Below, piece by piece: positions 1 through 53,347 of a stretch of DNA of 64,000 nt. The DNA lies in assembly GCA_021613535.1 (NCBI GenBank), contig CP075494.1, forward strand, positions 9,858,001-9,922,000. Direction: 5' to 3'. A program made the position numbers and the translations under genes. This DNA comes from Adineta vaga. Lineage: Eukaryota; Animalia; Rotifera. Numbering within the stretch: the stretch's first letter is position 1; every line of letters begins with the position of its first letter. A model generated the notes under the pieces. That model had not been told where the DNA came from, made no database searches, and saw only the letters and a program-made list of their open reading frames with translations.

Positions 1-2057
1 CATTGAATATTCCATATTTTGAAGGAGACTTTTGGTCGAATATTATTGAAGAAAGTATAAAAGGTATGTGTGTAATTTTTTTTTGAATTAAAATTGAATC
101 CGAGAAAATTTCTCTTTAGAACTTGATCAAGAAGAAGAAGATCGAAGAAAACAAGAAGTTGAAGCAGCAAGAGCCATGGAAGATGGTGGATTTGATGATC
201 CTATTGAACCAGAAGATCAAACCGATGTAAATAAATTTTCCTTAAACGAGTATATCTCTATTTTTCATATTGTTTTTCAATAGACATCCGATAAACGTAA
301 ATCAACTACGACCTATAAAAAGAAGAATTTGAAAAAAACAACATCCAGTCAACGTAAAGTAGCAAAAAAACAAATGTCAAATTGTACTGATTTATTATCG
401 AAAGTTTTCGCTACTATGGAAAAACATAAAGAGGTAAATATACAAACAAAAATATAGATTTAATAGATATCTATGAAATTCTTTAGGCATTCTTTGTTAT
501 TCGTCTTCGTAATCCTATTGCATCTTGTCCAGCTGTTAATGATACGGATGCTTTAATTCAGTGTGATTTAATGGATACTCGAGATGCTTTTTTAAATTTT
601 GCTCGCGATAAACATTATGAATTTTCTTCATTACGTCGTGCCAAATTTTCTACCATGGCTCTTCTCTATGAATTACACACGTCAACAACAGATAAATTTA
701 CATATAATTGTAATACATGTCGACAACAATGTGAAATACGTTATCATTGTACTGTATGTGAAGATTTTGATCTCTGTGAGAAATGTTATAATATTGAACC
801 TAAACATGAACATAAAATGGAACGTTCTGTTCCATCAATTGTCGAAGATTGTGATCAAAATTCTTCAAATCCAAATGGTAAATCAATGGCTAGTTCACAA
901 TTGCAACGCCAACAATCTATGCAACGTTGTATTGAAGCATTATTACATGCTGTTAATTGTCGAAATGCAAATTGTGTTAATCGAAGTTGTTTTCGTTATA
1001 AACGTGTTATACAACATACGAAAGATTGTAAAGGAAAAAATAGTCAATGTAATGTTTGTAAACAAGTGATATTTCTCTGTTGGTATCATGCAAAAAGTTG
1101 TATGGATCAACATTGTCAAGTACCGTTTTGTACGAATTTAAAAACTAAAATACAAAAACAAAGAGCGACTAGCTCACAAACTGATCGACGTCGTATGCAA
1201 GCGATGATGCAACAGAGAACGAGTACAATGCAATCACAGACACAAGGTAAATATTCAGTTTTTCAATTCATATCTATAAGATAGTATCATATTATCATTC
1301 GTATTGAACTTAAATTGCAAAGAAAAAACTCTATCATATATTTTTAGTATCAACCACACCAACTCGTACTGATTCCATATCGAATTCCTCTCATTTATCA
1401 TCCTATGATACGGCTCTAACAAATCAATCAGTAAATAATTCATCGGGTAAACCATCTGTAACACTTATTCGTACACCTCAACAACAAACTAATTGGCATA
1501 ACCAACCACAACCACAACAACAAACATATATTATGGCACAGAAACCAAACACTGGTAAACCAATTAGTAATCTATCTCAACAACAACAACAACAACAACC
1601 ATCCAATGACTTAAGTTTATTAATCAATCGAGTTAAACAAGATCCATCTACTGATGAACAACAACGATCTGACATAAATGATCAAAATAAACAACAACCT
1701 ATGTTTTCACCATTACTAAATAAAACTTCGACTAATCGTTTACCAACTTCAACATACATACAACCACAACAAAATTGGTATTCGTCAACCTCTCAGCAAC
1801 AATTTAATCCGCCATCTAATTTTTCAACTGCCACACGTCCTCGTTATCCATCTGTTATGCCTCAACAAACTCAAAATCAATCATCACCACAAACACTTTT
1901 AGCACCATTAAGACCGAATTCTTCAACTCTACCTCCTACTTATATAACACGAACAAGTTCAACACCAAATTTACCGCGAGCACAATTGATAAGACCTCAT
2001 CAATTCTCTTCCCAACAACAACAGCCACCATCCTCACAAGATCCATCTATACGCTAA
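1..2057 (+). CDS. CBP: CREB-binding protein/p300 histone acetyltransferase, 3' part (end of HAT domain, ZZ, TAZ2, Q-rich tail); multi-exon, 5' end outside window
   Basis: Spliced translation gives IPYFEGDFWSNIIEE, MEKHKEAFFVIRL, CDLMDTRDAFLNFARDKHYEFSSLRRAKFST, ZZ finger (YHCTVCEDFDLCEKCY) and TAZ2 (CIEALLHAVNCRNANC...HAKSC...CQVPFC); stop at 2055-2057. Confidence 0.95.
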
Positions 2058-3208
2058 TGTTTCTTTTCTCTCCTTTCATTTTTGATTTTGTCTGTACATG
2101 TTTGTTTTCTTTTCATTTTCTTTTCTCTGCGTTTGTCCTTCTTTATTTCTTGCTCTTTTTTTTACGTCTATATTTGATACACACTATTAACCTTCTCCGT
2201 TTGTCTTTTGCTTGTGTGCGCGTGTGTATGATCCGTTCGTTTCCTATATGATGAGAAAATAAAAGTAGTTACTTTTTTGAAACAGGAACGATTTTATTTT
2301 ATTTTTCTGCCTGGCAAAGAAGAACTTCTGTGCGTATGTATATAGATTTGAGATATTCATTCATCAGCATGCGCTTGGTTCTATCTTTTTCTAACATTTT
2401 TCTATGTTGTTTGTGGCGTGCTTTGCTTTCTTTCATTCATGTTCCTTTTTACAAAAAATAACCAACAACTTAAACAAGAAGAACCGTGTGTATGTCGGTT
2501 TGGTTTCTTTCTTTCTTTCTCTTTCTTTCGTTCGATTTTTTAATCACTGTCGTTTTCCTTGAACATTTTTGGTTTTGTTGTTGTTGTTCTTCTCAACTGT
2601 CAAGTTGAGTCTTTTTTTTTTTCGTTTTTTTTCCTTTTTCTTTTTGATATGTGAATAATAAAACAAAAACAAGATGAAATATTTCGTCAAATTATCAAAC
2701 ATATAACCTCAATTAATAGTTGTTAAGCACAATCGTTTGTAATGATAATCAAAATTTATTAAGAGAGATATAAAAAAAATATGAACATTTAGTTTGATTT
2801 CAATTCATTCATTCGAAGTTTTTTTACATTAATTCTGCAATTGTTTTCGTTTACCATGAAGATCCATAAGTGATTCAGTTGATTCTGATCTATCATCTTG
2901 AATGAAGGATTGTTTGATGTTGATTTTTACACGACATTCTTTTGCATAAGTTGAGAAAATATCGAGTAATCGATGAAATGTTTCTATATTAGCATAAATT
3001 CTATGACCAGTAAACGATGAATCTTTTGGATTTTATAATAAGTTTGGTTTTAGATAGAGAGAACGAGAATTTATATAGACGATATGCGCTATTGTACACG
3101 TGATCTTTCTTCTAATGTATTACCTCGATTATACGTACATAAAAATATGTATCGAAGTTGCAAAATATACTTTGATTATTTTGATTAAACCTAGTTATAT
3201 GCATGTCT

Positions 3209-3568
3209 CTATAAAATATTTTGTGCCGGAAGCATTTTATAATAAAATCTATGTCTTTCTATCAGATCTATGTGTGTGCCACTTTCTACTCCGTGTTCTT
3301 TATCCATAACATATATTAAATTACATGAAAGAATAGTCGATAGACGATGAGCAATGATGATTGATGTTCGACTTGGATCTTCTGCTTGAATGTGATCAAC
3401 AGCTCGTTGTGTAATCTATCATCAACAAGTGAAAAAATTGGCTAGATATGAAAAAAAAGAAGTGAAACTGACTCGTTCATTGAATGAATTTAGAGCACTT
3501 GTTGCTTCATCGAATAATAGAATCTTAGGTTGACGAAGAAGAACACGAGCCATCGTACTTCTATTCAT
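3209..3568 (-). pseudogene. Isolated C-terminal NBD2 fragment of an ABCB/P-glycoprotein transporter (2 exons)
   Basis: Reverse strand reads ARVLLRQPKILLFDEATSALNSFNE / ITQRAVD...SRTSIIIAHRLSTI...VESGTHIDLI (Walker B and H-loop); no upstream ABC exons seen. Confidence 0.75.
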
Positions 3569-4695
3569 TTTTCAAGTTCTTTCTTTATCAACATTTTTTT
3601 AAACATTGTTTATACAACAATTGATATCTTAACAATAAAAGTAAATTCTAGATGTATATGTATAAGAAGTAGACCATTCCGACTCGTTCACTACTTCGTT
3701 TTATGAAAATATATTTCAATTACGAGAATTATAAAGATGTTGCTAGATTTCAAAAACTGGAGTTTGAGTTGGATCTGGAATCAAAAAGGTCGATGATGCA
3801 GTACACTAGGCAGGACATATTCATCTTTCAATTCAACAGATATGAATCGATGTTTTGGTGTTGTAAACAACATAAAGTATTTTTTTGTTTCATTTACCTA
3901 CAGAAAATTCTTCATAGATGTTGCATTCTATTCAAAAAATAAGAACACTACAAATAAATATGATTATTGATGAATGATTGTCGCTCTAATTTTAAGAAAA
4001 ATAATCAGAATTGACAAGATAAGTCAAATAAGTAATACGAATTCTACGCATATATATATATATAATGCAGAATTTTTATTTTCTTCCATTTATAAACGCA
4101 ATCTTTAGTCAATGAAATTTAATATGTCAGTATGACATTGTATGTTCTCATCATCGTACTTATTGTGAACTGACAAACGATGAGAAATATAATATTTAAA
4201 ATATAGAACAGTTCTTTACAATCGCTAAAAAATCATAGAAAAACTTAAATGTATTGCTGTCTGCTCTTACTTAAGAAAATGAATCAAATTATTTTTATTA
4301 TCACGAGCAAGTATAAGATCATTTGGTTTGAAACTATACAATAGTTTGATCTTTAATGTGACTATGCAATTAATGATTTTCAATCTAGTTTATCGAGTAC
4401 TATTTTCATACAAACGATTTATTTGAAAATTATTCGTTGTGCATGATAATTCTTGTATTGTATATCCTTGACATTTTCAAGTATATTTTGAATTGCTGTT
4501 TATCAAATCGAAAAGGTCATCTATTTGTTGTGATTGATCACAGAGGAATTAGTGAGATATGGTATTTAATGATCTTTTTATTCGAACTTTGAAGAACAAG
4601 ATCGCATCTCTTTATAGTCTGTAATCAGATTTCTTTTCTTTTATGTTTATTTTATCAAAAGAGAAGACTCAACTTCTTTCATAGATCTAAAAAAT

Positions 4696-7282
4696 ATGCC
4701 AAGTGAAATTCTCAAATGGTTTAAACAACGATGGCGTTTATTAGTTGTCATATTAACACCATTGATTCTCCTTCCAATTCCACTTGTTGGCAATTCAACG
4801 GTATAAAAAAAATCTTTTTAAATTTTGCTTGTTTTACAAGTTCTATATTGAATTCTTCTTTAGCAAGCAAGATGTGGTTACGTAGTGCTAATTTTAACTA
4901 TCTTTTGGGTTTTTGAAGCCATACCTTTGCCAGTTACGTCTCTTTTACCACTTGCACTGTTTCCAATGGTAAGTTTTCTTTCGTACAAATCATTTTATAC
5001 TTCAATCTCTATTGTATAGGCAGGAGTTTTACGCGCAGATGAAGTAGCACCACATTATTTCAGAGATATTATTACACTTTTCTTTGGTAGTATGAGTATA
5101 GCTTATGCGGTTGAATCAGTGCAGCTTCATCGAAGAATTGCATTGTTCGTATTGAGTCTTGTAGGTACATCAACGAAATGGTAGGAAAATAATTATTTAT
5201 CTTTAATCGTCACTTGATTTCATCTGTGTTTTTAGGTCAATGGCTGGTATAATGGGTGTGACTGCTTTTCTTTCCATGTGGATAAATAATACAGCAGCAA
5301 CATCAGTGATGTTACCAGTTGTTTTGGCAATTACAAATGAACTTGAAAATCATCATAAAGGCTATCATGAAAAGAAGTATGCACTCAAAGAAGCAACATG
5401 TGCAGTAAATGGTAATTAATTGATTTAGACGATAAAACTTATTCATAATTCATCTCTTTTCATAGAAGTACTTGATTTAACTCAAACTGAATTAGCTTAT
5501 GATCGTACTCCCGAAGTTATTCTAAATACATTACATATTGAAGAACCGTATAGAGACAATCAGTTTAGCTCAACTATTTTTTTTCTGTATTGCAATTTTC
5601 TTTTGTAGTAAATCAATCAATTCAGGAACGGTGAAAAAGCATTTTCAATTGCCATGGAAAAAATCAAATCAATTGATACCACATACATCCGTACAAACAA
5701 AATATGAAAATATTAAAAAAGGTATTTATTTACATTTGAAAAAAAAAGGTTTTATCAAAAATTTCTTTGTATAGGTTTTCTTTTGGCTGTTGCATATTCA
5801 GCTTCCATTGGTGGTTTATCGAGTTTAGTTGGAACAGCACCGAATATATTTGTTAAAGGTTTTGCTGATAGGTTATAAGACGAAAACGATACTTTTTTTC
5901 TCTTCTATTATTATTATTATTTGATTTCATCTATTCGTAGTCATTATAAAAATACGGCTTTTCGGATAAATTTTCTTAATTTTCTACTCTTCGCTTTGCC
6001 TGTCGCTCTATTGATGCTTGTTGTCTGTTGGTTATGGTTACAGATTTATTACAATACAAAAGAGTTTGATACATCTTAAATAGAAAAATATAGTTCGTTA
6101 AAGCGCTTTTTTTGTCGTAGATTTTTTCAATGGCGTGCTGATTTGGAATCACAAGCTGTACAAGCTGATTTAAGAGCGATGTTAAACAAGCAATATACTG
6201 ATCTTGGACGACCAAAGTAAATTAATATATTTCGTTGTATTGAACTTCATTTTAATTGTACTTTAGATGGAATGAAATATCCGTAGCAATTGTGTTTGTT
6301 CTCATGATTCTTCTTTGGATTACGAAAGATTTTTCTGGTACACCAGGATGGGAGATAATCTTTCGTCGGAAATTTATTAGTGATGGAACCGTTGGAATTT
6401 TTTGTGGAATACTTCCATTGATTTTACCAAATGCCAATCCTTTCCAAAGTTAGATTGATATTTGCAAGATAATTTTGAAATCATCTGCTATTTTTGTAGA
6501 AGATTGGTCTTATCAACCAATTATTCGTTGGAATGATCTCGCAAAAAATATGCCATGGGGTGCATTGTTGCTACTCGGTGCTGGTCTAGTTGTTGCAGAT
6601 GCTTTTCAAGTTGAATAGTTGATCAAATCGTTTCCATATTTAGTTGTTTCCTTTTAGGTTTCAAAATTATCACAAAGTGTTGCAAAAGCACTTGGCTTTC
6701 TCGCTGGTGTTCCACGGGCAGCCGTTATTTTAGTCATTATTATTATTAGTGGATTTTTTACTGAAGTTACATCAAATTTAAGTACAGCAAGTATATTCTT
6801 TCCTGTTTTAGATTCAGTTGTAAGTTGAAAAATATCTACTAGGATATAAAATAACCTTTCTCTCTCAGGGACGTTCATCTGGTATTCATCCTGCATATCT
6901 TATTCTTCCTTGCACATTAGCAGTTTCATTAGCTTTTATGTTACCTATTGGTAAGAAAGTGTATTCAAAATGAAGTTGAACGAATTTCTTTTAATAACGT
7001 GTTTTTTAGCAACACCACCAAATGCCATTGTTTTCGCAAGTGGAGTTATTCGTGTTATTGATATGGTGAACTATATATATTGAAATTTAAATATCGAAGC
7101 TTTTCATTATTATATAGGTTAAAACTGGTATTGTTATGAACATAATTGGTTTTCTAATCATTTTCTTTGCAGCAACCACGTGGATGCCAAAAATTTTCGG
7201 ATTAGATGATCGAGCAACGGCAATATTTCTTCATTTAAATACAACAATTAACAATCAAAACTTATACAATGGAACCGGATGA
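4696..7282 (+). CDS. SLC13 / INDY-like Na+-dicarboxylate/sulfate cotransporter, multi-exon
   Basis: Exons encode WVFEAIPLPVTSLLP, LHRRIALFVL, FLSMWINNTAAT, AYSASIGGLSSLVGTAPN, TEVTSNLSTA, AFMLPIATPPNAIVF. Confidence 0.93.
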
Positions 7283-26273: not shown

Positions 26274-26377
26274 TGTTGCTCTGGCAGATCAGTGTTACCA
26301 CCAATCCACACGATTTCGTCATCGCAACATGTATTTAATCCGTTAGGATATTTACCTCTTGGTAAGTTGTAATAAGC
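26274..26377 (-). ncRNA. Spliced-leader (SL) RNA gene, pair 1 left
   Basis: GCTTATTACAACTTACCAAGAG (matches the bdelloid SL as I recall it) + GTAAAT donor + structured 82-nt intron closed by TGTTGC/GCAACA. Confidence 0.9.
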
Positions 26378-26510
26378 AACTTTTCTTCACAATGTGTGGA
26401 GCACAAACTTTTCATTGTCTCTACATATATGGTTTTGGAAGAAGCAAACGAAAAGTAAGATGTGTCGAGACAGCGTAGATGGCGTGCTCTAGAGACCACC
26501 GAAACAAATT
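26378..26510. promoter_or_regulatory. Bidirectional SL RNA promoter (133 bp), pair 1
   Basis: ATRTGTMRAGACR-N11-GTGCTC-N21 upstream of each SL start. Confidence 0.7.
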
Positions 26511-26614
26511 GCTTATTACAACTTACCAAGAGGTAAATATCCTAACGGATTAAATACATGTTGCGATGACGAAATCGTGCGGATTGGTGGTAACACTGAT
26601 CTGCCAGAGCAACA
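26511..26614 (+). ncRNA. SL RNA gene, pair 1 right
   Basis: Same leader, donor and intron. Confidence 0.9.
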
Positions 26615-27533
26615 CTTTTGCTTAATAAAAAAGAATTAAATTTACACAAATACGACTGAAAGCTTAGAAATTAGTCAGATGGTTGATGTCTATTCACAAA
26701 CGAACAATGTGTTCGAATTCGGATAATTTTTAGAACGTATAGATTATATATTGATGTTCAGATATAATTTATTTCTAATATCTTATAAAAATCCTCCACC
26801 ATTCTTTATGACGCCAGCCACTTATAGATTCCGATTCGTGATATTAATCATTGCTGTCAGGATAGTATCGATCGACTTTCTCTAGACGCACATATGTACC
26901 ATGCTCATCATAATTGATATGGTGTTTAAATGATCTTGAGAATGATTGTTCATACGAGTTTTATGAATCAATAACGGTTTCCTATTGTATTTTCAAACGC
27001 TAATACTTAGTGGAAATCTATTCTGATAACCAAATCAAATCGAGTGAAAACTGTTTTCACGTTAGATCAACAATGCTGGGTTGTTAAATTGTATCACAAA
27101 AGATTATTTTTATGTAAGAGATCGTTTCATACGTTGATGGCAGTATTTGATTTGAATTTCTAATTCTTATATTTGACATAAAACAATATTTTATTATAGA
27201 ACGAAAATAAATAATCGATGTCAACGATACAAATCTGCCTGTAGTATTTGAGGTTACCTATTTTAGACTACACGTACTTGTATCAACAACTAACTATAAG
27301 ATTTCAATTATCTCATCATCTAAGTTTCAGTAATACTTTTCGATCACCCATTCATACTTAAATATTAGAGCCGTAATAGTCGGTTAATATCCTTCATTTT
27401 CAATCGAGAGTAAAAAAAAGCGAATGAAATTAATGTAAAGTACATCAAACGATGTTTTGGCGATTTCATAATGAATAGTTAAGCGGGGATGATCGTAGCT
27501 ATATTATCTTTATAATTTTGATTAATGAAAAGC

Positions 27534-27637
27534 TGTTGCTCTGGCAGACTGGTGTTGCCACCAATCCGCACGATTTCGTCATCGCAACATGTATTTAATC
27601 CGTTAGGATATTTACCTCTTGGTAAGTTGTAATAAGC
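27534..27637 (-). ncRNA. SL RNA gene, pair 2 left
   Basis: Same leader, donor and intron; stem variant CACCAGT. Confidence 0.9.
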
Positions 27638-27770
27638 AATTTATCTACACAGTGTGTTGAGCACAAACTTTTCCTTGTCTCTACATATATGATGTGGGAA
27701 GTCGTAAAGGAAAAGTAAGATGTGTAGAGACAGCGTAGATGGCGTGCTCTAGAGACCACCGAAACAAATT

Positions 27771-27874
27771 GCTTATTACAACTTACCAAGAGGTAAATAT
27801 CCTAACGGATTAAATACATGTTGCGATGACGAAATCGTGCGGATTGGTGGTAACACTGATCTGCCAGAGCAACA
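27771..27874 (+). ncRNA. SL RNA gene, pair 2 right
   Basis: Identical to 26511-26614. Confidence 0.9.
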
Positions 27875-43930: not shown

Positions 43931-44064
43931 TAGTTGACAGGGTAAAAAAGAGAAGGAAATTAATGTGACGTCCATCAGATGATATTTTGGGGATTTCATA
44001 ATGAATAATTAAGCGGGAATGGTCGTAGCTATAAAATCTTTATTATTTTGTTTCAAAGAAAAGT

Positions 44065-44140
44065 TGTTGCTCTGGCAGAGCAGTGTTACCACCGATCCGC
44101 ACGATTTCGTCATCGCAACATGTATTTAATCCGTTAGGAT
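44065..44140 (-). ncRNA. 3' part of the SL RNA gene interrupted by the LINE (pair 3 left)
   Basis: SL intron sequence from ATCCTAACGGATT to GCAACA directly follows the LINE poly(A). Confidence 0.88.
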
Positions 44141-44243
44141 TTTTTTTTTTTTTTTTTCCTCTCTTGTTTTATTTATTTGCATCCATGACAAAAAACCACT
44201 AAATTCAACCTGAAAAAACAAGTATGTTAGTGCAATGACTAGG

Positions 44244-47200
44244 CTAACCAACATCAAAAGGTAACCGTTTGATGGTTGTTAAGAAAAGTCGGGTTGCCAT
44301 GGATGGATCTAATTCAAAATTTCGACTACATTGGTGTCTGGCGATATTTCGATATTTCCATATGGAAAATAAATAGTTGCCGATCATAAAAACGATATTC
44401 TTCCGTATTTGACGAATGGGCGATAACTGATTGATTTCTTTGAGGTATATAATATCGATTGTTGTTTTACTAATTTTGTTACCACAGATTGATTCTAATC
44501 TGTCGTTGAGACAGTCAAAGAGCTTGTTAAAAGCGGAACATTTCGTGAAAAGATGAGATGGAGTTTCGACTTCGTTGCATAAAAGACATTTTCTTGTATT
44601 TTCATTGTGGCCGGTACGTGATCGAGTATGGATTCCATAATTGGCTAAGATCATCCAAAAGTCCAGTGTGTGACTGGGCAAGCTTTCTCTCAGCAATCGG
44701 AAAAAATTGATATTTTTTAAAAGTGGAACTTTACGTACAGAAACAGGATGACGAAAGTAAAATCGATTAACGATTTGCCAGTAAAAGGATGGTTGATTTT
44801 GTTGTATGTTTAGACTTCCACCTGCTTTCAGCCACTTTGCAGTATTTGATGCAACTTCATGGAAGAAAGAATCGCCTTTCTCGATGTGAGGTATCAGATT
44901 TGACCAAAGACGTGGGGCATATTGTCGTAATTGAACACCTGTTTCTATTAAAGCATAAAATTTCCAAGGAGCTAAATGCAATGGATTGATCAGTTGAGAA
45001 CCACATTTAATTCGAAGTGCTTCGATCATTGCTTGAAGGTGCGGTAAACTATAACCCCCGTCATGTTTATGTCCGATAATTGTTCTTAAATGAATTCGAG
45101 GACCCAAAGAAGACCAGAAGAACTTCACAAACATATTTTGCAGCTTTGCCACCACTTTCTTCGGAATAACTGAGAGTGAAAACCAATATATCAATTGACT
45201 CAAAATAAAAACTTTCAACACCGTTACTCGTTCCTTTAAGAAAGGTTAATTGTGGACCAATATCCAATCTGTTGTTTGATACTATTTAATTTCTTTTCCA
45301 ATTCGAGTGGTGGCAGTTGTCCTTTTGTATCCATTGGAATACCCAGAAAGATACACCATTCGCAATTAATTTTGGCTTCGAAATATGGTGGAGTCAGCCA
45401 ATCTGATATCCATAGTATTTCGGTTTTGGAGCTGTTGACTTTTGCTCCTGATGCTTGACTATATAATTCAAACATGTCCATTGTTGATCTTTCTTCGTCG
45501 CGATTTCGTACAAGTGTGTTGATGTCATCGGCGTAAGCTATGGTTTTGATTTTCACTTGTTCCGTATTGAGTATATTGTCATTAATTGGAAAAATAATTT
45601 GACGAATAGCTCTAAACTGACTTCCAGGTAGAAATGCACCAGGAATTGATTGATTTAAACGTATACGATTTAGGAGTGGTTCGAGACAAATAATAAATAA
45701 TAAGCCTGATAGGCTGCAACCCTGCCTGACGCCCGAACTAAAAGCAATCGACGTAGAGATGTAATTGTTTAATTTGATTCTAAAGGATCCGTTGCCATAA
45801 AGAAGTTTTATCCAATTGATGATATTGGAAGTAAAACCAAAAGCATTTAATACTCCTACTAAATATCGATGGTTAATCCTATCAAATGCTTTCTCCTGAT
45901 CCCATAAAACTATCCCAATCGGATCACGAATTCGTCTTTGGTATTCAATGATTGATCTGATTAAAATGACATTGTCCTGTATTGACCGGCCAGGAACTGA
46001 ACATGTTTGATCAGGATGAATGATGTTGGCAATCACCTTTCGTAGACGTGTACTAAGAACCTTTGATAATATCTTGTAATCGATGTTCATCAAGGAGATA
46101 GGTCGAAAATCTTTCATCGACCCGTCGGATTTGTTCTTTTTCTTGAGGAGAGTTAACAATGCTTGAAGAAATTTAGGATGGAATTGACCTTTTGTTTTAG
46201 CAGTGTTAATCATTTGAATGTAATGGCTGCCAATTATAGGGAAAATCAATCGCCACACCTCGGCAGTAATGCCATCATCACCTGGTGATCTTTGATCAGG
46301 AATAGCACGAAGTGCATTAAAGCATTCCGATACTGATATTTCTCGATCTAATAATTCACGATCTTCTTCACTTAATTTTGGTAAATCAGCGAACAATTCA
46401 CTCCATGATGACATATTGATTGTTTTTTCTTTATATAATTCATGATAAAAAAGTGTGGCAACTTCGAGCATGTCGTCAATTTCCTCTACACGTCCTTTCA
46501 GTGGATGGTTGAGGAAATGGATAACAGATTGATTTGCCCGCGTACTTGATAGACGTGAAAGAGCAATTTCTCCAAGTTCTTGAGTTGTTTTATCACCGTG
46601 TCCATGATTATTTGCCATTACTTTTTTGACCAAAGTGTCGTGGATGGTATCACGAATTTTATCCATCTCCTTTAAATCGTTAGCTGAAGCATTCGTTGCA
46701 AGTGTGCGATAACGTTCTTGAAGACATTTAATACCATTTCGTGATTCAGCAACCATTTGTTTTTGTTCATCTTGTAAGAGCAAAATTAAACTAGTTTTTA
46801 AATCTGACCACCAGGCAAGATCTTCAAAATTCGAAGACTTTTTGAGTACTTCCCATATTTTTTGGAAACGAGGTAGAAAACTTGGTCTTTTAATCACTTC
46901 GCCATTACATATCCATCTATGGTATTCTGTTGTTGTTGTTGGAGGTGATGATAAATGAAGTGACATTCCATCATGATCTGAAATGCCAACGGGTGTATAA
47001 GCAATATGCAAGATGTTTTTGCGTATAACCTTCGTTCCAAAGAAAAAGTCGATGCGACTGTGTATGTTTCTGGATTCATTGTGGTAAGAGTACACGATTG
47101 AACGAGGGTGTTTTGAGCGATATAATTCGATTAAAGATAATGGTTGTAGAAATTCACTATTGAGAGTTGCATAAGAACGTTGATCATTTCGACCTTCTTG

Positions 47201-47656
47201 GCGAAGACGATCTTTTGTTGGATCAGCAATACAATTAAAATCACCTCCAATCACCATCCAAAGAGATGTCGGAATATATAAATGAAGATCTTTGAAAAAA
47301 TCCCACCTTTCATTTACTTGTGTTGGTGCATAAACACTAGCTACTGTAATAGGACAATTGTTGATTATAATTTTGGCGAAGGCGATCCGACCACTATAAT
47401 CTACGCCAGAATCAATAATGAGTAATTTGTGTTTTATCATGACCATTACACCACCAGCTGACCATGTTCCGAGACTACAGAAAATAGCATAATCAGTGAA
47501 TGATTGTTTGAAGAGATCTAATTGTTGTTTCGACGTAATATGTAATTCTTGTAGAAGAACAATATCATGCGGGTTAACTTTGAGCCATTCTCGAAATAAT
47601 GATTGTTTATTAACTGATACAATGCCACGGATGTTAAATGAGAAAATTGTAATCAT
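44244..47656 (-). CDS. LINE ORF2 (APE endonuclease, RT, C-terminal CCHC) with one apparent 1-bp frameshift at ~45237
   Basis: SFNIRG, LLQE, GGDFN, SRIDF, SDH; FRPISLMNIDYKI, DQEKAFD, GVRQG, YADD; CLLC...HLFTKC; one extra T restores NLS-LKERVTVLK. Confidence 0.9.
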
Positions 47657-47849
47657 GTTTGATGTAATTGTTTAATCGGTAAGGAATTTATAATTTTTTT
47701 TTTTATTTTGAATGATTTTTAAACATTTTTTTTTGGACTTTTAATTAGTTCATTAATTTTTTTTTTTTTTTTAAATATTATATATACATGTGTATATATA
47801 TTTATTCTTTTTAATGTTTTTGTGTGATTTTTACTTGTGAGATGGAGAG

Positions 47850-49046
47850 TTATTGGTCATTAACTTCTCCCTCCTCTTGTTCGTCCATTACCGACGTTGA
47901 AGAATCGTATGTGTGAGCTTTCTTTGGGTCCACTTCTAGATCCGAATCGATGCTTCTATCTGCACATGTTCGTTTAAAATCACTTGTTGAGTTCTTGTAT
48001 GCTTGATACATTATACGTTCTTGTAATGACGTGGCTGTTGTAGCAACCACAGCTTTTTCATTTTGATCCTCTAATAATGTGGACTGTTGTGGATCAAGTA
48101 TTACATTGTCTTCATTTTCTGGTACAGCTTTTGTATTTGTCAAAGTTGTTGTTGTTTGTTGAACTTCTTCGACGGAAATAACATGATTATTTGTATCTTC
48201 TTTTCCAGGTTGAATATTAAGATTTTGCTGAAGAGAGCAATCTTTGGGTTTATGACCAGATTGTTGACAACGAGGGCAAACTTTCTTTTTCCGCTTTTGT
48301 GAAGCCGTTGTTGGTTTAAATACCTGTCCAACTGGAGTAGATTCAACACCCGTATCACCTTGAATACTTGGTGAGTTTGTAGAAAAAATGTTCACTGGTG
48401 TTTCACTAACTGCAGCTGCATATGATTTATTCTGTTGGCATAATGGATCATCATGTCCAAGTGTAAAGCATTTATGACATTTTAAAACTTTACATTCCGC
48501 TTTAATATGACCAGCTTGTTTGCATCTATAACAAACTTTTTGACGACCTTCAAGATTGACCGAGAACGTGTAACCATTATAACGAATACTAATAGGTACT
48601 TTTTCTTCGTCTTGGCGTGTAAAAAAGCGAATACGTATGCGACGTACGAATGTTTTGATTGTTTCAAAAGGTTGTGGCAGTTTTTCTACATCAACATTAA
48701 GAACTAAACCTCCCCATTTTGAAGCAATTGATCGAATATCATCGTCTGAAATAGCTGGTGGAACATTAAGTAATCTAATAATTTTGACATGTTTGTATGG
48801 TTCGCTAATCATAAATGTTTGATCACCAACTTTAAATTCATTATTTTTAAGAATAATTTCTCTTGCATTGGTTGTTTTAAAGATAACGTACCATTCAGAG
48901 AAATTTCCGAGATTTCCAAACGAGTCAATATCTGACACTGGAATGATCTGACCGAGAGCATTAATCATTCCTGTGCGATCAATTCGATCGCTACCTTTAA
49001 TCAATGTAAGCAAAACTGCTTCCCGTATCAACTGGTGAAACGACAT
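47850..49046 (-). CDS. LINE ORF1 (gag-like, CCHC zinc knuckles)
   Basis: First ATG at 49046; CYRCKQAGHIKAEC, CHKCFTLGHDDPLC, CPRCQQSGHKPKDC. Confidence 0.9.
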   Translation of the reverse strand: MSFHQLIREAVLLTLIKGSDRIDRTGMINALGQIIPVSDIDSFGNLGNFSEWYVIFKTTNAREIILKNNEFKVGDQTFMISEPYKHVKIIRLLNVPPAISDDDIRSIASKWGGLVLNVDVEKLPQPFETIKTFVRRIRIRFFTRQDEEKVPISIRYNGYTFSVNLEGRQKVCYRCKQAGHIKAECKVLKCHKCFTLGHDDPLCQQNKSYAAAVSETPVNIFSTNSPSIQGDTGVESTPVGQVFKPTTASQKRKKKVCPRCQQSGHKPKDCSLQQNLNIQPGKEDTNNHVISVEEVQQTTTTLTNTKAVPENEDNVILDPQQSTLLEDQNEKAVVATTATSLQERIMYQAYKNSTSDFKRTCADRSIDSDLEVDPKKAHTYDSSTSVMDEQEEGEVNDQ

Positions 49047-49221
49047 TATAAAATTTCGTAACCAAAGATAAGCAAAGGTTAATGGAAATATATAATAGAA
49101 GGATAAATTGAAATAGAGCGCAGAATGAGCTGACAAGAATCACGCTAAAATCGCTCGTTTCACAGATATCTTCTTTGTTTATTTAAATTTGGAAAAATTT
49201 AGTGTTTGTTTTTCAATTCAA

Positions 49222-49262
49222 AATCCGTTAGAATATTTACCTCTTGGTAAGTTTTAATAAGC
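49222..49262 (-). ncRNA. 5' part of the interrupted SL gene (leader exon + donor + TSD), pair 3 left
   Basis: GCTTATTAAAACTTACCAAGAG|GTAAATATTCTAACGGATT followed by the LINE 5' end. Confidence 0.88.
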
Positions 49263-49395
49263 AATTTGTTTCGATGGCCTCTAGAGTACGCCATCTACGC
49301 TGTCTCTACACTTTGCACTTTTCCTTTACGACTTCCCACATCATATATGTAGAGACAAGGAAAAGTTTGTGCTCCACACATTGTGAAGAAAAATT

Positions 49396-49499
49396 GCTTA
49401 TTACAACTTACCAAGAGGTAAATATCCTAACGGATAAAATACACGTTGCGATGACGAAATCGTGCGGATCGGTGGCAACACTGATCTGCCAGAGCAACA
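49396..49499 (+). ncRNA. SL RNA gene, pair 3 right
   Basis: Leader, donor and intron. Confidence 0.88.
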
Positions 49500-49690
49500 A
49501 CTTTTCTTTCAATAAATGAAATAAAAGATAAAATTCTTAAGAATGTGAGTTTTGTTGTGGCAACTATTCCGATTTGAAAGCAAGCTTTTCACATCAATCT
49601 GCAACACTGTTATAGAACGTTTGATGTTACTGATTATTTTCGTATCTCATTTTGTACTACACAGTCAGTTATCTTTCTATATTAATGGAT

Positions 49691-49776
49691 AAAAGTTGTT
49701 GCTCTAATAGATCAATGCAACAAACGCGCATTTATGTAGACTGAAGACAATATCAATCTGCTAGAGCAATATTTTC
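49691..49776. pseudogene. Collapsed relic of an SL gene pair
   Basis: AAAAGTTGTTGCTCTAATAGATCAATG and CAATATCAATCTGCTAGAGCAATATTTTC resemble the two outer ends of an SL pair. Confidence 0.55.
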
Positions 49777-50229
49777 CTCAATTTCTTGTCACATCAGAAA
49801 GGAATTTTAACGACCGTTAAATAACAATTCCAAATTATTGTTCAAAAATTGCAAATGGTTAAACTTCGATTATATACTCAATATCAACAATGCCAATGAA
49901 ATGCATCGGTATTCTACACACTTTTAATGAAACTATTTATATCACACATCCATTCTGTTTCTTTTGCTGAAACCGAAAGTTATAGATTCATTAAATTTTG
50001 TTCTTCTCTGTGATCAAATTAGTCAAATCGAATCGTTGTTGCTCATTCTCTTTTTAACTTGATTGTGTTTCAATTAGGTTATCACATTTATATTATTATA
50101 TTTGAGTTAGTGCATAATTAATTATCTTCTTTTTTCTCTATACTTATCCGTGAGTATTTTCTCTGGTATGTAATAAATTCATTATGCACGGTGAGTAAAT
50201 ATAAAGTTTTCTTTGGTTAATAAAAAAGT

Positions 50230-50333
50230 TGTTGCTCTGGCAGATCAGTGTTGCCACCGATCCGCACGATTTCGTCATCGCAACATGTATTTAATCCGTT
50301 AGGATATTTACCTCTTGGTAAGTTGTAATAAGC
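50230..50333 (-). ncRNA. SL RNA gene, pair 4 left
   Basis: Leader, donor and intron. Confidence 0.9.
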
Positions 50334-50466
50334 AATTTTTTTCGATGGTCTCTAGAGCACGATATCAACCTCGTCTTTACACATCGTACTTTTCCTTCCG
50401 TTCTCCCGAAACCATATGTGTAAAGACAGCAAGAGAATCGTGCTCTAGAGACCATCGAAACAAATT

Positions 50467-50570
50467 GCTTATTACAACTTACCAAGAGGTAAATATCCTA
50501 ACGGATAAAATACATGTTGCGATGACGAAATCGTGCGGATCGGTGGCAACACCAGTCTGCCAGAGCAACA
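50467..50570 (+). ncRNA. SL RNA gene, pair 4 right
   Basis: Leader, donor and intron. Confidence 0.9.
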
Positions 50571-51522
50571 ACTTTTCTAATAATCAAATACAAAAAGATA
50601 ATCTAAGTACAATCATTGTATCGATACTACCAGTTGTGATAGGAGAAAATATGTAATGGATGAATGCACTTTATTTTCTTGATCAAATAACATCTCTCAT
50701 TATAATATTCTACCACCATGCAACTATTCTCTTAGTTTTAATCTAAATAGATGTCAATTTTTTAACTTTCTCTTAACAAAGCAACATTGCTTGGCTGATA
50801 TATCATTATCACATGATAAATGCTTCGAAGTAGACAAGAACAATACGGGGATCGAGTGAGGGAGTCGTACGTTTTCTTCAAAATACATCGTATTTAATCT
50901 TGATTTAGTAAATTCATAACGATACATGCCTTAGACACCCACAAGAATTACAATAAAGTCATAGCTTTCAAATGTATGATCTCAATCTCACAGATTCATT
51001 ATCGGCACTAGTAATGATTAACCAATTTTCAATGTATAGACAGTTTATTGTTCTATAGATGTTGCTTTATCCACCTTTCAACCACTCAACAGTATATGAA
51101 GCCACTTCACACAAGAACGTGTTCACATACTATATTTGAGGAATTAAACTAGACCGAAATCACTCAATAAAACGATTCCGAACACAGACCAGTATTCGAT
51201 CTGTTGTTTGATGTTAATATTTTATACTCTCATTCTGTTTGTTACATTGCTAACTGCGTCTATAAATATCTCAAGAAAAGTGTACCAGTCGCGACATACT
51301 TACGCTTCGGGGAGTGACATCAAAGACCACTTCAAACTCGAAAAAACCGTTCATGAACCAATGCATGTTCTGCGATGAAATGCATTTTCCCATACTCTCA
51401 ACCGAATTCATGTCGACATTTTTTTTAGATTTACATTCATTCAGCTTTATTGAGAACTCGTAACAAATGTTAAGATGCTTTTACAGATTGGATTATTTTT
51501 TTTCCTTGTTTAATTATAAAAG

Positions 51523-51626
51523 TGTTGCTCTGGCAGATCAGTGTTGCCACCGATCCACACGATTTCGTCATCGCAACATGTATTTAATCCGTTAGGATAT
51601 TTACCTCTTGGTAAGTTGTAATAAGC
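51523..51626 (-). ncRNA. SL RNA gene, pair 5 left
   Basis: Leader, donor and intron. Confidence 0.9.
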
Positions 51627-51759
51627 AATTTGTTTCGATGGTCTCTAGAGCACGCCATCTACGCTGTCTTGACACATCTTACTTTTCCTTTACGACTTCC
51701 CATATCATATATGTAGAGACAAGGAAAAGTTTGTGCTCAACACACTGTGTAGATAAATT

Positions 51760-51863
51760 GCTTATTACAACTTACCAAGAGGTAAATATCCTAACGGATT
51801 AAATACATGTTGCGATGACGAAATCGTGCGGATCGGTGGCAACACCAGTCTGCCAGAGCAACA
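51760..51863 (+). ncRNA. SL RNA gene, pair 5 right
   Basis: Leader, donor and intron. Confidence 0.9.
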
Positions 51864-52648
51864 GCTTTTCTTTCAATCAAAATTATAAAGATAATATCGC
51901 TACGATCATCCCCGCTTAACTATTCATTATGAAATCGCCAAAACATGGTTTGATGTACTTTACATTAATTTCATTCGCTTTTTTTTACTCTCGATTGAAA
52001 ATGAAGGATATTAACCGACTATTACGGCTCTAATATTTAAGTATGAATGGGTGATCGAAAAGTATTACTGAAACTTAGATGATGAGATAATTGAAATCTT
52101 ATAGTTAGTTGTTGATACAAGTACGTGTAGTCTAAAATAGGTAACCTCAAATACTACAGGCAGATTTGTATCGTTGACATCGATTATTTATTTTCGTTCT
52201 ATAATAAAATATTGTTTTATGTCAAATATAAGAATTAGAAATTCAAATCAAATACTGTCATCAATGTATGAAACGATCTCTTACATAAAATAATCTTTTG
52301 TGATACAATTTAACAACTCAGCATTTTTAATCTAACGTGAAAACAGTTTTCACTCGATTTGATTTGGTTATCAGAATAGATTTCCACTAAGTATTAGCGT
52401 TTGAAAATCCAATAGGAAACCGTAATTGATTCATAAAACTCGTATGAACAATCATTCTCAAGATCATTTAAACAACATATCAATTATGATGAGCATGGTA
52501 CATATGTGCGTCTAGAGAAAGTCGATCGATAGTATCCTGACAGCAATGATTAATATCACGAATCGGAATCTATAAGTGGCTGGCGTCATAAAGAATGGTG
52601 GAGGATTTTTATAAGATATTAGAAATAAATTATATCTGAACATCAATA

Positions 52649-52871
52649 CAGTGCTGTTCAAAATTATAAGAACAAAGCTTTTTTTTATGTATTAACAAAT
52701 TTTTATCTCCCTTTTCTCTGCTTAAATTGATCTCTCAAATAGTATATATGTATTCGAGTACTCGAATACATATATACTATTTGAGAGATCAATTTAAGCA
52801 GAGAAAAGGGAGATAAAAATTTGTTAATACATAAAAAAAAAGCTTTGTTCTTATAATTTTGAACAGCACTG
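52649..52871. mobile_element. Tc1/mariner-type MITE forming a near-perfect spacerless palindrome
   Basis: CAGTGCTG...CAGCACTG termini, TA TSD; empty site in the mirror arm at ~26749. Confidence 0.88.
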
Positions 52872-53006
52872 TATATAATCTATACGTTCTAAAAATTATC
52901 CGAATTCGAACACATTGTTCGTTTGTGAATAGACATCAACCATCTGACTAATTTCTAAGCTTTCACTCGTATGTGTAAATTTAATTCTTTTATTATTAAG
53001 CAAAAG

Positions 53007-53110
53007 TGTTGCTCTGGCAGATCAGTGTTGCCACCAATCCGCACGATTTCGTCATCGCAACATGTATTTAATCCGTTAGGATATTTACCTCTTGGTAAGT
53101 TGTAATAAGC
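53007..53110 (-). ncRNA. SL RNA gene, pair 6 left
   Basis: Leader, donor and intron. Confidence 0.9.
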
Positions 53111-53243
53111 AATTTGTTTCGATGGTCTCTAGAGCACGCCATCTACGCTGTCTCGACACATCTTACTTTTCGTTTGCTTCTTCCAAAACCATATATGTAG
53201 AGACAATGAAAAGTTTGTGCTCCACACATTGTGAAGAAAAGTT

Positions 53244-53347
53244 GCTTATTACAACTTACCAAGAGGTAAATATCCTAACGGATTAAATACATGTTGCAAT
53301 GACGAAATCGTGTGGATTGGTGGTAACACTGATCTGCCAGAGCAACA
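53244..53347 (+). ncRNA. SL RNA gene, pair 6 right
   Basis: Leader, donor and intron. Confidence 0.9.

Follow-up and report, generated by a model that had tools for sequence, protein, structure and literature searches.

An APE-type, Keno-like LINE that probably targets spliced leader RNA genes of the bdelloid rotifer Adineta vaga

The window analysed here, a stretch of 64,000 nucleotides from the bdelloid rotifer Adineta vaga (C5:9858001-9922000), contains a spliced leader (SL) RNA gene that is split directly after its GTAAAT splice donor by a non-LTR (non-long terminal repeat) retrotransposon, or long interspersed nuclear element (LINE), lying in the same orientation as the gene. Coordinates are window positions unless a chromosome or another contig is named, and gene order is read on the minus strand. 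The element is most probably (at a rough probability of 0.85) a site-specific retrotransposon of the L1/Tx1 group, Keno-like and equipped with an apurinic/apyrimidinic endonuclease (APE), whose target is the SL RNA gene. In this reading, its RNA template would be a read-through transcript carrying an SL leader, its insertion would proceed via target-primed reverse transcription (TPRT) with the 5' end joined through pairing of that leader, and its bdelloid clade would be nested among elements that target the gene of the U2 small nuclear RNA (snRNA).

The genome searched was one haplotype of one A. vaga assembly (100.8 Mb, six contigs). SL genes were counted by motif searches (exon plus donor; conserved 3' block), after which every match was read, giving about 63 genes, mostly arranged in head-to-head pairs and 12 of them located in the window. 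Exactly three of the ~63 genes (~5%) were found to be interrupted, namely the window gene, one at C5:10915948 (copy L005, 994 kb from the window copy) and one at C6:1428207 (copy L006). All three interruptions are members of this one element family, full length, in the orientation of the gene, and with the same nucleotide of the gene following the tail. The flanks outside the three occupied SL genes are unrelated and the poly(A) tails are 18, 10 and 18 nt long, indicative of separate insertions. The chance of hitting an SL site is ~3x10^-7 per insertion (~63 sites in 2x10^8 strand positions), and chance is therefore excluded as the reason that all three full-length copies lie there. Whole-genome searches at the DNA and protein levels revealed no further copy save one 110-bp 3' fragment, and no dispersed young or 5'-truncated copies in 100 Mb.

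The same target was found to be used outside A. vaga. A search with the second open reading frame (ORF2) of L005 as the query returned a tight group of 14 proteins, encoded in Rotaria socialis, R. magnacalcarata and other assemblies, with identities ranging over 48-83%; all other matches were at most 29% identical. Junctions were read in the encoding contigs and in metagenome contigs, with P0004 and P0009 outside these readings because their contigs end before any junction. Most of the relatives' contigs are taken for rotifer DNA solely because they carry the rotifer SL gene. Six clear and independent further insertions into SL genes (44-64% ORF2 identity) and one probable insertion (83%) were identified, all in the same hairpin (Table 1). 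In A. vaga and its relatives alike, the insertions lie 0-5 nt past the GTAAAT donor, in the intron part of the gene. The junction is at +0/+1 past GTAAAT in the subclade of A. vaga, P0001 and P0003, and at about +4, past the GATC stem, in the other two subclades, in which the duplication is still ~13 bp. Specificity for SL genes, which the sequence-only reading of this DNA had offered as a candidate from a single insertion, is thus supported by three of three genomic copies and six clear insertions in relatives, and a scatter of the family over unrelated sites was not what emerged. The comparison of 3' junctions that it had proposed showed one and the same SL nucleotide in A. vaga and the same hairpin in the relatives.

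Table 1. Relatives of the A. vaga element, with ORF2 identity and site of insertion
Locus	Source	ORF2 identity	Insertion site
L041	P0005	53%	SL gene, sense
L042	P0012	48%	SL gene, sense
L047, L048	P0011 (two loci)	48%	SL gene, sense
L050	P0003, Rotaria socialis	64%	SL gene, sense
L052	P0006	51%	SL gene, sense
L056	metagenome contig	44%	SL gene, sense; empty site seen in L058, where the gene is intact and shares the downstream flank
L043	P0001	83%	5' SL exon and donor, SL-like 3' flank, contig ends; probable SL insertion
L045, L046 (2nd copy)	P0013 R. magnacalcarata; R. socialis	50%	U2 snRNA gene (Rfam RF00004)
L040	P0002	65%	non-SL site, imperfect ~17-bp duplication

At the window locus, the exon of the interrupted gene matches the published 23-nt rotifer leader save for one A-for-C replacement (PMC3795323, Table 1 therein); at exon position 9 it carries an A, where 11 of 11 neighbouring genes carry a C. 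Its 3' part (44059..44139) shows 1-2 mismatches in 70 nt to neighbouring genes. The RNA of the intact partner gene is predicted to fold into a donor stem-loop followed by a small hairpin, AUCCUAACGGAU (z = -6.1), and the insertion point corresponds to the 5' base of this second hairpin. The two copies of the target at the ends of the element, 5' ATTCTAACGGAT(T) and 3' ATCCTAACGGAT(T), form an imperfect duplication of 12-13 bp with one mismatch. Because the final A of the tail could equally belong to the target, the nick can be placed at GTAAAT^A or GTAAATA^T. The nick site, GTAAAT(A)^TCC, is not of the TTTT/AA type, and the nick bases vary between gene variants and between subclades. A scan of the window against Rfam, which has no rotifer SL RNA family, gave 0 matches.

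The element encodes the domains expected of an APE-type LINE. ORF2 contains an N-terminal endonuclease (Exo_endo_phos PF03372, E 2e-13, residues 6-228) and a reverse transcriptase (RT; RVT_1 PF00078, E 1e-36, residues 506-749). The C-terminal zf-RVT match (E 5e-4) is below the Pfam cut-off; C1024, C1027, H1035 and C1040 are nonetheless invariant in 15 relatives, as are the GDxN, SDHD, YADD and C-C-H-C motifs. The zf-CCHC match of ORF1 is above the cut-off, at 25.4 bits. Among solved structures in the PDB, the best match of ORF2 is human L1 ORF2p (E 4e-64, residues 2-880); L1 ORF2p provides the only strong matches, which places the RT in the L1 group and not among R1, I, CR1 or RTE. The match to R2 reaches only E 1e-17 and covers the RT core, and the R1/TRAS endonuclease gave no match. 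Likewise, no restriction-like endonuclease (RLE) was found, the C-terminal region of ORF2 matching zf-RVT only and the APE domain standing at the N-terminus. A search of the ESM Atlas returned generic endonuclease/RT clusters only, in which Tx1 and L1 are not separated.

The ORF2 of the window copy is not open. A one-base length difference at 45238/45239 relative to the two sister copies divides it into frames of 806 and 325 aa, whereas in both L005 and L006 ORF1 is uninterrupted and ORF2 is a single frame of 1137 aa. The sequence-only reading had described a full-length element with two ORFs in sense orientation, a 13-bp target-site duplication (TSD) right after GTAAAT and a nick at GGAT^ATTTAC unlike the L1 site. 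The position, orientation and domains of the element, the location of the TSD and the non-L1 character of the site all held; the frameshift removes the intactness of ORF2, the repeat proved not to be perfect, and the exact nick base is ambiguous by one A. Five substitutions and a one-base indel separate the window element from that of L005 (99.90% identity), and L006 differs from both by 4.05% (95.95% identity to the window copy). Comparison of the L005 and L006 lineages gives a ratio of nonsynonymous to synonymous substitution rates (dN/dS) of 0.15 in ORF2 and 0.12 in ORF1; their divergence therefore arose under selection on the proteins. This state of the copies is as would be expected of a family that is active now or was so recently.

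Separately, contigs from a sequencing run labelled as another organism (X7) were observed to match parts of the element (window 44359-49023) at ~93-100% identity; close copies of the family are therefore present under another species label.

The phylogenetic position of the family was examined with an ORF2 tree under the posterior mean site frequency (PMSF) model and with a second tree to which metagenomic outgroups were added, both being quick searches with long branches and with metagenomic rather than Repbase Tx1, Keno and L1 comparators. The bdelloid clade is fully supported in the ORF2 tree, and all three of its subclades contain SL-inserted members. A Rotaria lineage inserted in U2 falls together with P0011 and P0012 inside the clade (support 98-100), and L040 falls inside it alongside P0003 and the copies from A. 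vaga. In the outgroup tree, the bdelloid clade joins a group with U2-inserted LINEs (95 by the Shimodaira-Hasegawa-like approximate likelihood ratio test, SH-aLRT), and another U2-inserted group stands across the tree. In the U2-inserted outgroups, the 5' part of the U2 gene up to ...GTATCTGTTCTTATC is followed by the element, its poly(A) and GTATCTGTTCTTATC again, a 15-bp TSD, and the 3' junction of the U2-inserted Rotaria lineage lies at the same U2 site. A long branch sets the bdelloid clade apart from its relatives, to which its ORF2 identity is 32% or lower, and no recognisable target was found at the junctions read in the closest outgroup group (L057, L059, L060, L064, L066). The most parsimonious history, which is provisional, would have an ancestor that targeted U2, a single change to SL at the base of the bdelloid clade and, in Rotaria, a subsequent reversal to U2. 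The nearest non-bdelloid relatives appear to be Keno-like elements in U2, which fits a Tx1-type origin of SL targeting independent of the RLE elements CRE, SLACS, CZAR and NeSL. The independent, APE-based origin suggested by the sequence-only reading is thereby supported, by the APE domain, the best match to L1 ORF2p and these U2-inserted relatives. Flot et al. reportedly first listed "Tx1" in A. vaga, in 2013. "Tx1" also stands among the LINEs of A. vaga, its target not being stated, in a later survey (Nowell 2021).

One metagenome contig carries both kinds of target. L056 (Ga0209930_1003720, 1-7000), which is rotifer-like, has several SL pairs together with a U2 gene in full (5665-5860) and the 3' end of the element in two identical copies (at 263 and 3639), and the two alternative targets of the clade are therefore physically interleaved. 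In L054, which encodes a 49% relative, a G-rich telomere-like run of TTTGGG/TTTTGGG (3470-3594) follows ORF2, replacing the normal 3' untranslated region (UTR) and SL flank.

The SL half upstream of the element was found to differ in origin from the half downstream. In L005, the 3' SL half shows 0/70 differences from four local genes, and over the 140 nt preceding the exon the identity to a local paralogue is 99%; this paralogue for these reasons serves as the empty-site reference. The donor and hairpin beside the element read GTAAAT-ATCTTCACGGAT, against GTATAT-ATCGAAAAAGAT in the local type, amounting to 7/41 differences from the local type versus 1/41 from the gene type of chromosome 2. In the 5' half of the window copy, two of 41 bases are absent from all 11 neighbours, the element body being only 0.1% off its sibling. 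Disagreement between the 5' and 3' hairpins was also observed in L041 and L043. Among the U2-targeting outgroups, L065 (165-270) has a partial U2 leader tandemly duplicated at its 5' junction, and L061 (701-760 / 5640-5700) has a U2 leader at its 5' end and a non-U2 3' flank, both indicating that the 5' part of U2 travels with the element RNA. Thus the SL half upstream of the element seems to be partly foreign to its locus, which points to read-through from the SL promoter and to 5' joining by homology, because foreign bases occur on the 5' side only and the 3' side matches the local type as soon as the tail ends; TPRT of an RNA already bearing the SL exon, donor and hairpin would leave such a pattern, provided that the 5' junction forms when the leader cDNA pairs with the exon of the target, and gene conversion would not. 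From these chimeric 5' halves we infer that the template RNA would start at the start site of the host gene. Read-through expression is known for R1 and R2 and has been proposed for Tx1-type elements (PMC4494074).

The following mechanism is proposed for the insertion. The ORF2 endonuclease would nick the antisense strand at the 5' base of the hairpin that follows the donor. Conserved flanks, and not the variable bases of the nick itself, would set its place: since those bases vary while the upstream exon and donor and the downstream block AAATACATGTTGCGATGACG are conserved, the protein probably recognises a conserved flank and makes its cut a fixed distance away. Reverse transcription would then be primed on the poly(A) tail, the primer end having little or no complementarity to poly(A) (e.g., ...GGAAAA-3' in L047). 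The RNA template would be a transcript that begins at the start site belonging to the SL gene itself and reads through into the element, with the SL exon, donor and hairpin as its leader. The 5' junction would be sealed when the leader cDNA pairs with the SL exon of the target, which would account for the donor-type bases beside the element. Such leader-mediated joining would also explain why all three genomic copies are full length.

The idea that a common L1-like LINE without site specificity hit an SL gene by accident, or through a loose preference for AT-rich nick sites, draws on the window alone, which shows one insertion in an AT-rich region. It deserves next to no credence, since three genomic copies and at least six independent insertions of 44-64% relatives share the SL hairpin at the per-insertion probability given above, the nick bases are not TTTT/AA and vary by subclade, and the unrelated flanks of the three copies speak against one duplicated locus. 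Spread at the DNA level among SL genes, by ectopic gene conversion, unequal exchange or segmental duplication through homology of the SL halves, is very improbable. SL genes are indeed clustered, similar repeats, and conversion tracts could in principle yield chimeric 5' halves; however, the tails differ in length, the copies lie on different chromosomes in unrelated flanks, the dN/dS values imply descent through functional copies, and the same site is occupied across species by elements only 44-64% alike. The asymmetry between a 3' half that is local from the first post-tail base and a 5' half that alone contains foreign bases is predicted by TPRT and not by conversion. Chance insertion, segmental duplication and gene conversion were rejected on these grounds, i.e., the same-site census, the unrelated flanks and the 5'-only foreign bases. 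It is also quite improbable that targeting is loose and that copies outside SL genes were lost because they were harmful or, deprived of the SL promoter, silent. Dependence on that promoter is plausible, off-target remnants exist (the fragment at C4:3807987 and L040), and bdelloid genomes purge transposable elements (TEs) efficiently (Nowell 2021), but selection explains neither the single-nucleotide precision of the 3' junction in each subclade nor the offsets of +0/+1 versus ~+4 between subclades, and the 100 Mb searched hold no dispersed young or 5'-truncated copies.

More room is left for a reading in which targeting is real and the element has an internal promoter, the SL 5' half being plain target DNA whose mismatches came from later mutation or short gene conversion. 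This is consistent with the agreement of the 5' and 3' hairpin copies in L047, with the exon variant of L006, which is native to its paralogues, and with presumptive RNA contigs that leave the SL/element junction uncovered. It is still unlikely, because the 7/41 non-local bases of L005 all fall within its donor and hairpin, with a promoter that is 99% local on one side and a 3' half that is 100% local on the other, because the window copy shows 2/41 changes against 0.1% divergence of its body, because the 5' hairpins of L041 and L043 are unlike their 3' targets, and because the U2-targeting relatives have duplicated or orphan U2 leaders.

Several observations weigh against site-specific, read-through-driven targeting as set out at the beginning. 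One is the 110-bp 3'-end fragment noted above, which is 78% identical to the element, has a short A tail and lies at a non-SL site (L007 4988-5092; C4:3807987-3808091, minus strand); it is an old, off-target, 5'-truncated insertion. Another is L040 (ENA ERZ25067825 contig, element at ~1620-6575), whose non-SL site is flanked by the imperfect ~17-bp repeat AGTGTGATTRGTCA...; its flanking target has no Rfam match, and L040 may represent a further target switch. Specificity for SL genes is therefore strong but short of absolute. Placement in the Tx1 clade depends on metagenomic relatives and on the quick, long-branched trees. Logan contigs, presumptively of RNA, that map to 44000-49500 cover the element body piecemeal, with 49152-49335, which includes the SL/element junction, left empty and no joints found. 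In addition, the window and L005 elements are 99.9% alike, yet their leaders differ, which requires donor copies that are absent from this haploid assembly.

An extension of the proposed mechanism can be put forward tentatively, as a possibility well short of even odds. The element may be a passenger in SL RNA transcripts, expressed from an snRNA-type SL promoter and so headed by the genuine SL exon and its donor, with this leader either cis-spliced to an acceptor in the element's own 5' UTR or supplying the SL 5' end and cap, and with the unspliced form serving as the template. The insertion point, which separates the donor stem-loop from the remainder of the SL RNA, would then be the only position that preserves the promoter, cap and leader while putting the transcript out of use as a trans-splicing donor. 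The candidate acceptor listed in Table 2 is partly kept in L006 and L043. If this is true, the element mRNA would look to the translation machinery like a trans-spliced host mRNA, and the moves between SL and U2 would reflect dependence on snRNA-type promoters as much as endonuclease specificity.

The features of the locus are collected in Table 2. SL genes form head-to-head pairs with donor motifs 173 bp apart (window 26350-27800 and 49235-53270; L027 = C5:9923200-9926250), six pairs lying inside the window and three more just past its end. Gene types are uniform within a cluster; between chromosomes, the donor (GTAAAT, GTATAT, GTAAAA) and the hairpin loop vary. A pseudogene-like SL copy at C6:4528473 (L008 574, plus strand) has a mutated exon, a truncated 3' part and no insertion.

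Table 2. Features of the interrupted SL RNA gene, the inserted element and the partner gene
Feature	Position	Strand	Remarks
3' part of interrupted SL RNA gene, starting with target hairpin copy TCCTAACGGAT	44059..44139	-	local cluster type
Poly(A) tail, 18 nt	44140..44157	-	AATAAA ~15 nt upstream
Non-LTR retrotransposon, 5.08 kb in total	44140..49222	-	5065-nt body (49222-44158) plus 18-nt poly(A)
ORF2, second part, in a different frame	44244..45221	-	RT C-terminal region and CCHC zinc-binding motif (zf-RVT)
ORF2, first part	45236..47656	-	APE endonuclease and RT; stop from one-base frameshift at 45238/45239
ORF1, 398 aa from first ATG	47850..49046	-	CCHC zinc knuckle; open frame extends back to 49136
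5' UTR of element	49047..49222	-	candidate splice acceptor ATTTTAG ~97 nt past donor (sequence inspection only)
Target hairpin, 5' copy, 12 nt, ATTCTAACGGAT (pseudo-TSD)	49223..49234	-	one base off 3' copy and local gene type
Splice donor GTAAAT of interrupted SL gene	49235..49240	-	
SL exon of interrupted SL RNA gene, 22 nt	49241..49262	-	rotifer SL consensus (PMC3795323)
Common spacer of head-to-head SL pair, presumed promoters of both genes	49263..49395	.	upstream 140 nt 88-92% identical to neighbouring pairs
Intact partner SL RNA gene	49396..49505	+	uninterrupted target GTAAAT-ATCCTAACGGAT

That retrotransposons find a refuge in SL RNA genes is a classic observation, made so far only for RLE elements, in trypanosomes and in nematodes. 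A clade of Keno-like, APE-type LINEs spread across the bdelloids that reached this niche independently would represent a clean case of convergent target choice. The series from U2 to SL and back to U2, together with the offsets of +0/+1 and ~+4, could show how integration by an AP endonuclease is retargeted, and bears on programmable LINE-based insertion tools. The family also bears on how a TE persists in long-asexual, TE-poor bdelloids: it maintains ~3 copies per haploid genome, occupying ~5% of a redundant gene family, and two of the three copies have open ORFs, their lineages having diverged under purifying selection. Finally, the chimeric 5' halves would constitute DNA-level evidence that a template RNA starts at the start site of the host gene.

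How does this family compare with known systems? In the published literature covered, a search that did not include Repbase or Flot et al. 2013, so that prior annotation is possible, no link of Tx1 or any other APE LINE to SL genes was found, in rotifers or elsewhere. Human L1 is the best solved-structure match of the A. vaga family over the endonuclease and RT, and human and mammalian L1 shares with it the poly(A) tail and a TPRT-type structure. L1 nicks degenerate TTTT/AA sites throughout the genome and its copies are often 5'-truncated, whereas the A. vaga family uses one site, is full length in three of three copies and has a CCHC knuckle in ORF1 in place of the L1 ORF1 fold. The R2 RNA is processed by a ribozyme and lacks poly(A). 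The R1 and R2 elements of ribosomal DNA (rDNA) share what is proposed here, namely no promoter of their own, read-through from the host gene, a target-derived 5' end that aids 5' sealing, and variable 5' but precise 3' junctions (PMC4494074). They belong to other clades and have another target, and co-transcription in A. vaga is deduced from chimerism in DNA only.

CRE1/CRE2, SLACS and CZAR of trypanosomatids and NeSL-1 of nematodes share with the A. vaga element a sense insertion specific to multicopy SL RNA genes. They cut inside the SL exon, carry an RLE C-terminal to the RT and belong to the early-branching CRE and NeSL groups; the A. vaga element, in contrast, has an APE, an L1-type RT, two ORFs and an insertion site in the intron part just past the donor, and the likeness is therefore attributed to convergence and not to kinship. 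"Spliced leader exons" are on record as a target of RLE elements (PMC4640811, PMC8869645). The element also resembles Keno and other target-specific LINEs of the Tx1 clade, which have two ORFs, an APE N-terminal to the RT and a C-terminal CCHC motif, insert in sense orientation at one nucleotide of a multicopy small-RNA gene ~30-35 nt past its start site, produce a 12-15 bp duplication and carry the 5' part of the target gene as a leader. Within the clade, Keno targets U2 snRNA genes, Mutsu 5S, Dewa tRNA and Tx1L Tx1D. Keno has been described as a U2-specific family of the Tx1 clade (PMC4494074, PMC4640811), and the targets on record for the clade are U2, 5S, tRNA, microsatellites and a DNA transposon (PMC4494074, PMC4640811, PMC8869645). 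The A. vaga element differs in having the SL RNA gene as its target. Overall, the system is therefore rated as a Keno-like mode of insertion with a new target, the SL RNA gene, converging with the SL-targeting RLE elements.

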